DNA of 63,773 bases, filler included, from Octopus bimaculoides (lineage: Eukaryota): assembly GCF_001194135.2 (NCBI RefSeq). It is 6 parts of 5 records of this genome, joined end to end, with 100 filler letters (N's around TTAATTAATTAA, not from the genome) between each part and the next. Parts side by side here need not be neighbours in the genome. Positions count along the whole stretch, not along the records: positions 17,223 to 38,979 come from NC_068982.1; 5 more parts are not named here. One strand, written 5' to 3'. The notes beneath the pieces were generated by a model. It had not been told where the DNA came from. It ran no database searches and saw only the letters and a list, made by a program, of their open reading frames with translations. Positions 17,223-17,746 of this stretch are shown here, in pieces. A program made the translations under genes and the position numbers. Each line of letters begins with the position of its first letter. The stretch's first letter is position 1.

Positions 17223-17746
17223 GGAAGAGGTCTTTGCTGTAGCATTTATCGATCCGCTGTGGTTTGCGTCTGGGGATGATTTGCCACGTGTTTTACGATC
17301 AGATGATCTATACTGCTCTGTCTTCTTCCCACAAGTCTTTCCCTGATGTATCTTCAAGCCTCTTTCAGTTGCAAAGGTTCTACAGCACAGCTTGCATCCA
17401 AAGTTGTTCGCACTTCGTTCGCTGTTCGAATGAATAGCCGTGTTCAAATCCAAGGTCGTTTCCGTGTCAACTGGGTTCGATTGATTCTCGACTCCCCCCT
17501 CTCGGTCAATCATGGGGCTGTCATTCTTATTTGTTTCTGTTACAACTAATACAAAGGCGAGGATTGTAAGTCCGCAGCCTTCGCCAGTCTTTCCTGGTGT
17601 CGATAGTCTTTCCTATTGTCCGCTCGTCTTTCCGAGCTGTCCTCTTGTCTTTCCAAGATGCCTAACCGTCTTTCCGGTTTGTCACTGGCTACCTACCACA
17701 AGGTCTTATATGTGTCTTGCAAACAACTTGCACATGCAAGTGCTAC
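17223..17746 (-). mobile_element. 5' end of a HERO-like (R2-superfamily, RLE) non-LTR retrotransposon: 5' UTR plus N-terminal zinc-finger ORF, truncated by the join
   Basis: ORF from 17513 contains CKLCCRTFATERGLKIHQGKTC then R..T....PDANHS, the C2HC-finger/GLKIHQ signature I recognise from HERO ORFs. The 5' boundary is where homology to the R4-like fragment stops (17747). Confidence 0.7.
17584..17679 (-). ncRNA. Array of five co-varying stem-loops (G-GAAAGA-C loop, GACA-like linker) in the retrotransposon 5' UTR
   Basis: Sense strand: AACCG gaaaga CGGTT / TCTTG gaaaga CAAGA / GCTCG gaaaga CGAGC / ATAG gaaaga CTAT / CCAG gaaaga CTGG. Confidence 0.8.

Follow-up and report, generated by a model that had tools for sequence, protein, structure and literature searches.

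The hairpin array and its host element

The window analysed here is a 63,773-nucleotide (nt) stretch joined from six parts of the Octopus bimaculoides genome (GCF_001194135.2), in which positions 17,223–38,979 come from NC_068982.1. On the minus strand it carries the 5′ leader and the first codons of a retrotransposon without long terminal repeats (non-LTR), and the subject of this study is an array of five mini-hairpins in that leader, which an earlier sequence-only reading had recognized. Comparisons were made with related elements, among them L001, a 19-kb metagenome contig from the European Nucleotide Archive (ENA) that carries the protein P0001. The features around the array are the following, with positions counted along the window and ORF denoting the open reading frame.

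17584–17685, minus strand: five mini-hairpins with stems of 4–5 bp, a closing G-C pair, GAAAGA loops and UGACA/GGACA-type linkers, supported by sequence, fold, homologues and covariation
17679–17664, minus strand: hairpin 1, AACCG-GAAAGA-CGGUU
17658–17643, minus strand: hairpin 2, UCUUG-GAAAGA-CAAGA
17637–17622, minus strand: hairpin 3, GCUCG-GAAAGA-CGAGC
17616–17603, minus strand: hairpin 4, AUAG-GAAAGA-CUAU
17597–17584, minus strand: hairpin 5, CCAG-GAAAGA-CUGG
17726–17741, minus strand: upstream hairpin ACUUGCA-CA-UGCAAGU, from the fold and from RNAalifold (pairs 17–39 of alignment A5, three with both-sided changes)
17554–17581, minus strand: downstream hairpin AAGGC...GCCUU around GGA-CUUACAA-UCC, from the fold and from RNAalifold (pairs 194–231 of A5)
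17480–17522, minus strand: near-invariant start box GACAGCCCC-AUG-AUUGACCGAGAGGGGGGAGUCGAGAAUCA, near-identical in the window, L001 and L005
17223–17513, minus strand: ORF codons 1–97 with a C-x2-C...H-x5-C zinc finger, cut at the edge of the piece and 60% identical to P0001 of L001

Read 5′ to 3′ as RNA, the linkers preceding hairpins 1–5 are (G)UGACA, AGGCA, GGACA, GGACA and CGACA, and the units follow each other at periods of 21, 21, 20 and 19 nt. All 18 variable stem pairs and all five closing G-C pairs are Watson-Crick, and both the minimum free energy and the centroid folds recovered the five hairpins (5/5). The array alone folded at −33.9 kcal/mol, compared with −17.4 ± 2.6 kcal/mol for dinucleotide shuffles (z = −6.4, 0/200). 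The five hairpins with a GAAAGA loop, GACA-like linkers and Watson-Crick stems that the sequence-only reading had described are therefore real. The antisense strand folded too (z = −5.2), as expected, since the stems are all Watson-Crick. Tandem Repeats Finder reported the array as a period-21 repeat of 3.5 copies with 80% matches. The window has six copies of the octamer GGAAAGAC vs. 0.52 expected; none of 100 shuffles reached six, and five of the copies are those of the array. The sixth (17335–17342, minus strand) lies in the zinc-finger codons and is explained by coding, because the site reads GGCAAGAC in L001 and L002; its codons are those of HQGKTC (GGN AAR ACN), and its flanks pair weakly (CAGG/CUUG).

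The flanking hairpins, which had been reported at 17726–17741 and 17554–17581, are present as well. The position of the upstream one is conserved in relatives, and in L001 and L199 it falls within a segment that is repeated at the 3′ end of the element; the downstream one is the counterpart of the GGGYYAGCANCCC hairpin of the relatives. Hairpin 5 ends at 17584 and the ORF ATG stands at 17513, so that the spacing between array and ORF, estimated before as about 70 nt, is exactly 70 nt. The start box, which looks like a separate RNA-level element, recurs at L001 845–885, L005 690–730 and L200 480–520, and in L200 it is kept although the ATG reads AGG. As a side observation, the nucleotides of the box (GACAGCCCC AUG AUUGACCGAGAGGGGGGAGU) are almost invariant and the codons after it diverge.

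The host element was characterized mostly through its relatives. The N-terminal zinc finger CKLCCRTFATERGLKIHQGKTC of the window ORF aligns with those of relatives but the zinc-finger region had no Pfam match, and a protein search with the 97-amino-acid (aa) N-terminus returned a single match, P0001 (60% identity). In L001 an RVT_1 reverse transcriptase (RT) domain comes after the zinc finger, and then a C-terminal part of 506 aa, which holds CRCG...H...C and KPDIVVW...ELTVPHED motifs, the endonuclease catalytic motif being read by eye. RVT_1 was detected at E = 2e-18 in P0002 and 6e-19 in P0004, both relatives, the window itself holding 97 codons. The sequence matches of the relatives in PDB were LINE-1 ORF2p and R2; a weak zf-RVT match was obtained in the domain search. 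The RT search collected 324 relatives, the closest named ones being proteins of Aplysia californica, and other matches came from bivalves, other gastropods, amphioxus, brittle star and fishes. For P0004, the most complete relative, the AlphaFold model (mean confidence score, pLDDT, 76.5) was compared with known structures by Foldseek, and the best matches were R2Tg (9dou, E = 3e-28) and R2Bm (8gh6, E = 4e-27), over 907–914 columns of 924 residues, with LINE-1 ORF2p behind them (E = 1e-21). The element is therefore assigned, from the sequences and the modelled fold of its relatives, to the R2-like non-LTR retrotransposons with a restriction-like endonuclease, that is, to the R2-like long interspersed nuclear elements (LINEs). 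The setting in a retrotransposon 5′ leader, as first proposed, thus holds, as zinc finger, reverse transcriptase and R2-like C-terminal region are all found in the family. The L001 insertion sits inside another transposon and not in ribosomal DNA (rDNA). Membership in the HERO clade, suggested earlier, is a candidate assignment: the host range of the matches (molluscs, amphioxus, echinoderm, fishes) and the non-rDNA insertion agree with the clade as described in PMC4640811.

Covariation of the array among related elements

To evaluate the array in relatives, DNA upstream of the ORF was collected in two ways. L002–L006, L199 and L200 were fetched via exact-protein look-ups, while L007–L035 came from an unbiased protein-pattern scan of Joint Genome Institute (JGI) metagenomes. 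The census covered the elements in which the zinc finger is preceded by at least about 300 nt (n = 17 including the window); L199, whose protein starts late and which lacks a 5′ region, contributed to the 3′ motif described below only, and the Aplysia protein P0005, whose gene model extends over 127 kb, contributed no DNA. The RT identities to L001 ranged from 36% to 71%.

The array was present in 14 of the 17 elements, namely in the window and in 13 of the 16 others, with 2–6 hairpins each (carriers: window, L001–L006, L009, L011, L012, L015, L016, L022 and L200). All arrays are on the sense strand and real arrays were never antisense, and all are bracketed by the conserved upstream hairpin and the GGGYYAGCANCCC hairpin. 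The linkage of the array to the ORF in other copies, on which the initial proposal depended, accordingly holds in these 13 of 16 elements.

The loop was less uniform than it had appeared. Its invariance, claimed from the five hairpins of the window, is true of these five, and GAAAGA is found in the closer relatives of the window, whereas in the family the loops vary around a consensus G-A-N(1-2)-A-G-W, with GAGAGA, GAAAGU, CAGAGA, GACAGA, GAACAGA/U, GAAGAGU, GAUAGA, GAAAGG and GAAUAGA among them. The family linkers are UGACA, UGACG and GGACA. In an alignment of loop units, A7, A9 and G10 were invariant and the closing G-C pair was kept in 30 of 33.

The stems, in contrast to loop, closing pair and linker, change in a compensatory way. 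Between the window and L001, hairpin 1 differs by three both-sided changes (A-U>U-A, A-U>C-G and C-G>U-A) and hairpins 4 and 5 by one each (A-U>G-C), while the stems of hairpins 2 and 3 are the same. Among 42 units from 13 elements, the four loop-proximal stem positions comprised 150 Watson-Crick, 13 G.U, 1 A.C and 4 other combinations, with 29 distinct 4-bp stems; when the 3′ arms were dealt to other units, pairing averaged 60% and reached 71% at most. Similar results were obtained with alignment A4, which consists of 34 units with six-nucleotide loops picked by motif and not by pairing. Here 89.1% of the stem cells were paired vs. 55.8 ± 3.0% in shuffles, the covariation score was 0.874 vs. 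0.229 in shuffles (0/500), and sliding the partner by 1–3 columns lowered pairing to 22–43%. Unguided RNAalifold on three leaders predicted 48 pairs, 18 of them kept through both-sided changes, and recovered four of the five array hairpins as well as both flanking hairpins. Further, GARAGA with at least 3 flanking pairs was found in arrays in 28 of 30 cases, vs. 17 of 416 elsewhere in the same loci (135 kb). Neutral stem-breaking substitutions in other copies would have spoken for an unconstrained repeat; the opposite was seen.

As G.U combinations are 13 and A.C combinations 1, the sense RNA is the constrained strand, and hairpins in antisense RNA or in minus-strand cDNA are disfavoured on the same grounds. 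These comparisons show an RNA structure of the sense strand whose pairing, loop, closing pair and linker are all under purifying selection, and such arrays are conserved across a clade of R2-like elements from molluscs and related marine metazoan sequences.

Hammerhead-like motif and mini-hairpins in other settings

About 100–150 nt upstream of the array, a motif with the three core strands of the hammerhead ribozyme (NUH, GAAA and CUGANGA) was found in 13 elements, and the window retains a degenerate remnant of it. Helices were counted by algorithmic helix parsing, while the MAFFT alignment A7, in which some rows are out of register, gave no pair counts.

L001 4317–4412, L002 3535–3605, L003 926–997 and L004 1885–1953: hammerhead-like motif (helix parsing)
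L005 392–458, L006 55–125, L009 214–282 and L011 99–166: hammerhead-like motif (helix parsing)
L012 3642–3739, L016 60–135, L018 2854–2937, L034 1868–1950 and L199 6296–6361: hammerhead-like motif (helix parsing)
Window 17774–17813, minus strand: degenerate remnant GGCUUCUCAAAAC...CGAAGAC, aligned (A1) to GGCCCCGAAAC...CUGAUGAC of L001

All four helices of the motif covary. The helix that follows the N-U-H triplet has its other strand abutting CUGANGA, the base after GAAA pairs with the N of the triplet, and this pair, 15.2-16.2 in hammerhead numbering, covaries (GAAAC with GUC/GUA, GAAAU with AUC/AUA and GAAAG with CUA); a helix of 5–6 bp begins with G and ends in C before GAAA. Like in a hammerhead, the CUGANGA, GAAA and NUH strands occupy their proper places with respect to helices I and III, and a G...C pair is found at the site expected for 10.1-11.1. 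Unlike in a hammerhead, the 10.x strand precedes the 16.x strand and does not come after A9, and an extra helix ties the distal ends. The strand order, a5′-G-bd5′-bulge-III5′-UH|I5′-linker-a3′-GAAA-III3′-bd3′-I3′-CUGANGA, is not canonical, and on paper it amounts to a pair of three-way junctions connected through three helical edges, the chain having its break between A9 and G10.1. Canonical hammerheads of types I–III were rejected, as the strand that pairs with 11.x comes before the 16.x strand and A9 is followed by nothing complementary; assignments to HDV-like (hepatitis delta virus-like) and twister ribozymes were rejected by hand because the helix order does not match. The motif may represent a hammerhead of new topology, or else a fold without catalytic activity.

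The complete motif lies 3′ of the ORF stop, at the 3′ end of the element, in L001 and L199. The L001 insertion, bounded by means of an intact copy of the host transposon, starts 9 nt past the predicted cleavage site, and about 110 nt are repeated at both of its ends (551–660 = 4380–4489). Terminal direct redundancy was also seen in L002 (1–38 = 3641–3678 and 3890-) and in L200 (1–150 = 4247–4396); across elements it spans about 40 to >150 nt, with the array outside the repeat. Since the full motif is at the 3′ end and the 5′ end is near the predicted cleavage site, the redundancy suggests an R-like repeat or tandem master copies of an R2-like LINE. Perfect palindromes TGACGTCA of the cAMP response element (CRE) type were noticed upstream of the ribozyme-like motif at about 828 in L003 and at about 1745 and 1769 in L004. 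Located in the 3′-terminal part of the retrotransposon, they may serve as promoters for a downstream tandem copy.

Viral and prokaryotic sequences were scanned with a pattern of three GGARAGAC motifs at the spacing of the array. Many matches were plain tandem or coding repeats without hairpins and were set aside, while about 30 represent the same module, with stems that differ from each other yet pair and with UGAC/UGGC/UGCC linkers, in five settings.

L087, L089, L094, L098, L100, L101, L111 and others: arrays in transfer-messenger RNA (tmRNA)
L130, L141, L142, L157, L159, L163, L175 and others: arrays in tmRNA
L084 137–272 (minus strand), L154 7157–7272 (plus strand), L125 (minus strand) and L192 (minus strand): arrays in ribosomal RNA (rRNA) leaders
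L052 4246–4330 (minus strand), L092 3089–3157 (plus strand), L176 (minus strand), L059 281–350 (plus strand) and L078 (minus strand): virus, Chloroflexota and phage matches

In the tmRNAs of Acidimicrobiia and other Actinomycetota, which were confirmed as tmRNA by Rfam and ARAGORN, three UGAC-stem-GGAAAGAC-stem hairpins stand about 120 nt after the tag reading frame, where the pseudoknots PK2–PK4 are expected. The rRNA-operon leaders of Rhodobacteraceae hold 4–6 such hairpins, of which the last has a GAGAGA loop. They follow a promoter-like CTTGCG-N17-TATACT and precede a boxA-like UGCUCUUUGACA by about 100 nt; in L154, 16S rRNA begins 375 nt downstream of the array. In Chloroflexota gene leaders, the array adjoins the Shine-Dalgarno sequence and the start codon. 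The 4.4-kb contig L052 is a tombus-like RNA virus (RdRP_3, E = 2e-73) with the array at nt about 110–190, before the first ORF, and two phage contigs carry the module, one beside a tRNA-like 3′ end. The arrays outside retrotransposons also folded better than shuffles (z = −3.8 to −4.6). The hairpin module looks like a general, previously undescribed RNA building block, and since bacteria and an RNA virus have it too, a ligand found solely in the element's own zinc finger is disfavoured. The variant GGAGAGAC is faintly like the sarcin-ricin loop, with no functional link established.

Possible functions of the leader array

The array has a defined structure, conservation, strand, position and linkage to the ORF. 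For its function we tentatively propose, at a probability of roughly 0.35, a multivalent leader platform for a general translation partner, which would serve translation and ribonucleoprotein (RNP) formation on a processed, uncapped RNA. Each unit is an autonomous mini-hairpin with a 4–5-bp stem of free sequence, the closing G-C and a purine loop G-A-N(1-2)-A-G-W, which on paper could extend the stem via tandem G.A/A.G pairs, and UGAC/GGAC linkers connect the units. The element RNA would be released by self-cleavage at the hammerhead-like motif and hence be uncapped. The 2–6 like loops and linkers might then form a landing platform for the small ribosomal subunit or for an initiation or leader-binding factor, and thereby allow cap-independent translation and RNP formation of the processed RNA. 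A general translation partner is favoured because the module sits in a virus, in bacterial mRNA and rRNA leaders and in tmRNA. A translation platform is favoured by the additive look of 2–6 copies and by the precedent of ribozymes at LINE 5′ ends, where cleavage is reported to suffice for downstream translation (PMC8501958).

Several results weigh against this proposal. L014, L017 and L020 had no clear array despite carrying upstream sequence, so the array is dispensable or replaceable. The Rfam hammerhead models gave no match on L001 at E up to 10 and none on L002–L006 at E up to 1, and together with the non-canonical strand order this leaves the premise of an uncapped RNA unproven. No complementarity of the array to a known rRNA segment was found, and none was tested. 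Separately, pairing of the loops with the 3′ tail of 16S rRNA was dismissed for wrong polarity, by reasoning and not by computation, and kissing of the array loops with a UCUUUC loop of the L001 repeat was dismissed as not conserved in other elements. The scan pattern required three GGAAAGAC motifs but neither stem complementarity nor linkers, so that in the prokaryotic matches only stems and linkers are independent evidence. Finally, the cross-kingdom recurrence suits a structural role without ligand equally well.

Such a role, in which fast-folding, self-contained, pyrimidine-poor hairpins strung like beads insulate the start region against RNA upstream, shield the new 5′ end from exonucleases or act as spacers, similar to the hairpin behind the ribozyme of synthetic RiboJ insulators, is a doubtful but sizeable possibility. 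It agrees with the recurrence of the module where structural filler is plausible (the pseudoknot region of tmRNA, leaders), with freely varying stems, with copy numbers of 2–6 and with the position of the array directly after a ribozyme-like motif, yet a mere spacer would leave the four conserved loop positions, closing G-C and UGAC linker across metazoan elements, virus and bacteria unexplained. Somewhat less probable is that the array is the protein-binding 5′ RNA of the element itself, to which copies of the ORF protein bind for RNP assembly with cis preference or for control of second-strand cleavage and synthesis, as with the R2 5′ RNA. The R2-like model of P0004, with the R2Tg and R2Bm target-primed reverse transcription (TPRT) complexes as best Foldseek matches, the PDB entries of R2 with ‘5′ORF’ RNA (8iby and 8ibz), the constant company of array and ORF, and a variable copy number that would suit avidity all speak for it; however, tmRNA, rRNA and mRNA leaders and an RNA virus carry the module and none encodes such a protein, the loops drift (GAAAGA, GAGAGA, GAACAGU, GAUAGA), and the N-terminus of the protein is poorly conserved, as its single match in the 97-aa search illustrates.

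Readings at the level of DNA, of methylation or of coding are all improbable. LINE 5′ untranslated regions (UTRs) often contain internal promoters, and periods of 19–21 bp would place GGAA (ETS-type) and TGACA/TGACG (AP-1-, CRE- or MEIS-type) cores, present in every unit, about two helical turns apart as an internal promoter or enhancer, in line with the TGACGTCA palindromes of L003 and L004. Transcription-factor sites need no complementary flanks, though, the 13 to 1 excess of G.U over A.C is the signature of single-stranded RNA, GAGAGA, GACAGA and GAUAGA loops lack GGAA, and an RNA virus and tmRNAs carry the module too, so that we consider a DNA-level function improbable. Still less credit is given to the hairpins as substrates or sensors of adenine-N6 methyltransferases. 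The conserved RGAC linkers include GGACA and UGACA, which fit DRACH, and the ACAGA core of METTL16 hairpins has look-alikes in the loops CAGAGA, GACAGA and GAACAGA, the MAT2A 3′ UTR offering six hairpins with one conserved loop; but ACAGA is absent from the GAAAGA loops of the window, the stretch that matches DRACH is short, the last linker reads CGACA, and no one enzyme spans bacteria, virus and animals. The same reading could invoke GGAAAGAC, which, according to PMC12887398 and PMC7449152, equals 23S rRNA 2056–2063 with the A2058 site methylated by Erm enzymes. This 23S segment is the site of macrolides and Erm and also forms the core of the TLR13 ligand, and no functional link to the arrays was established. 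Least credible of all is a translated heptad repeat (D-x-L-E-R-Q-D) at the ORF N-terminus, or a neutral tandem repeat. The gene caller did begin at an upstream GTG in L001 and read DILERQD DFLERQE DGSERRD, and Tandem Repeats Finder sees a period of 21. A coding repeat is excluded, however, because the periods vary over 19–21 nt, with units 4 and 5 (periods 20 and 19) shifting frame so that the octamer is read as ER, then KD, then GK/KT, and because the open frame of L001 meets a TAG in the window; nor would coding explain compensatory stems and strand asymmetry.

The proposed translation platform was also compared with known systems. The R2 5′ RNA comprises an HDV-like ribozyme and a 5′ protein-binding RNA. 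The present elements share with R2 the protein fold, a structured leader with a ribozyme-like start, and a single ORF with an N-terminal zinc finger, but they differ in a hammerhead-like instead of HDV-like core, in the mini-hairpin array, of which R2 has no counterpart, in insertion outside rDNA (L001 in another transposon), and in a terminal redundancy of about 110 nt. Multi-copy arrays of one loop are known from the five iron-responsive elements (IREs) of the transferrin-receptor 3′ UTR, the six METTL16 hairpins of the MAT2A 3′ UTR, the GGA hairpins of CsrB/RsmZ and the AUGC-linked hairpins of the alfalfa mosaic virus 3′ UTR. Like the octopus array, these have repeated hairpins, compensated free stems and a conserved loop and/or linker, and theirs bind one protein multivalently; unlike them, the octopus array has the loop G-A-N-A-G-W, the UGAC linker, stems of 4–5 bp and a position in the 5′ UTR. 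None of the defining loops of the IRE, METTL16, CsrA and AUGC families was found in the window array. In detail, the consensus G-A-N-A-G-W with closing G-C is unlike the IRE (CAGUGN, C bulge), boxB (5-nt, GNRA-like) and CsrA (ANGGAN with GGA) loops, and the METTL16 loop UACAGARAA is not matched by the window GAAAGA, an ACAGA-like core being found in some distant relatives only. The boxB of phages lambda and P22 is similar in its short stem and purine, GA-rich loop (GAAGA, GAAAA, GACAA), and the Rhodobacteraceae array lies near a boxA-like UGCUCUUUGACA. In contrast, boxB has one loop only, GNRA-like and of 5 nt, to which phage N binds, while the array loops have 6–7 nt and come in arrays, and we know of no N-like protein for them. 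In a comparison with k-turns and k-loops, G1 A2 ... G5 A6 could pair as tandem G.A, leaving 2–3 nt for the loop. The LINEs Perere-3, RTE and L1Tc, which have twister-variant or HDV-like ribozymes, are similar in a 5′-end ribozyme whose cleaved RNA is translatable, the kind of RNA on which a leader of tandem hairpins would act, but their ribozymes are of another class, and the abstract of PMC8501958 mentions no hairpin array for them.

Rfam gave no match for the arrays of L001–L006, and for window positions 17223–18400, at E up to 10, only a chance mir-297 match on a GT repeat. Within the searchable literature, no publication on the array or the hammerhead-like motif in these elements was found, and nothing pertinent on HERO with hammerhead, on GAAAGA tandem stem-loops or on hairpin replacements in tmRNA. 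Platforms of identical hairpins for a protein and ribozymes at LINE 5′ ends are known kinds, while the module, its distribution and the topology of the motif appear undescribed.

The array bears on how, outside R2 and L1, RNA of non-LTR retrotransposons without a cap-linked promoter is translated and recognized in cis. The leader array is compact (about 100 nt), strongly covarying and easily mutated, and its place, with a putative self-cleaving motif on one side and the start codon on the other, makes the question directly testable. If one partner were shared, the module would amount to a new RNA-recognition motif of a general kind; should convergence on a stable fold be the cause instead, it would be a natural ‘insulator’ part for RNA engineering; and the hammerhead-like motif, if active, would widen the known ribozyme topologies and add a ribozyme class to LINE 5′ processing. 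A bolder form of the platform proposal, which we consider distinctly unlikely, is that the UGAC-linked GARAGA mini-hairpin is a cross-kingdom module for one universal partner, the simplest candidate being the small ribosomal subunit. Animal retrotransposons, a tombus-like RNA virus, tmRNA and the leaders of bacterial mRNA and rRNA would each have taken it up independently. In the retrotransposons it would act downstream of a hammerhead ribozyme of a new topological class, with a second three-way junction linking the far ends of helices I and II and a backbone that is interrupted between A9 and G10.1.

Two further features were noted in the neighbourhood of the array.

18033–18257, plus strand: a second, 5′-truncated fragment of the family (QETTSHESDSTRRRPRILWPAANEKEKYKEFENKVCRALYKM...), oriented opposite to the first, broken off at a (GT)47 microsatellite and homologous to residues about 15–85 of the L001 ORF
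21820–22104 and 23439–24462, plus strand: pieces of the ORF of a different LINE, one endonuclease-like and one from the RT with PISLTSHIIKVFQRVL

The fragments of the different LINE, over 21820–24462, are interrupted by N runs and microsatellites.

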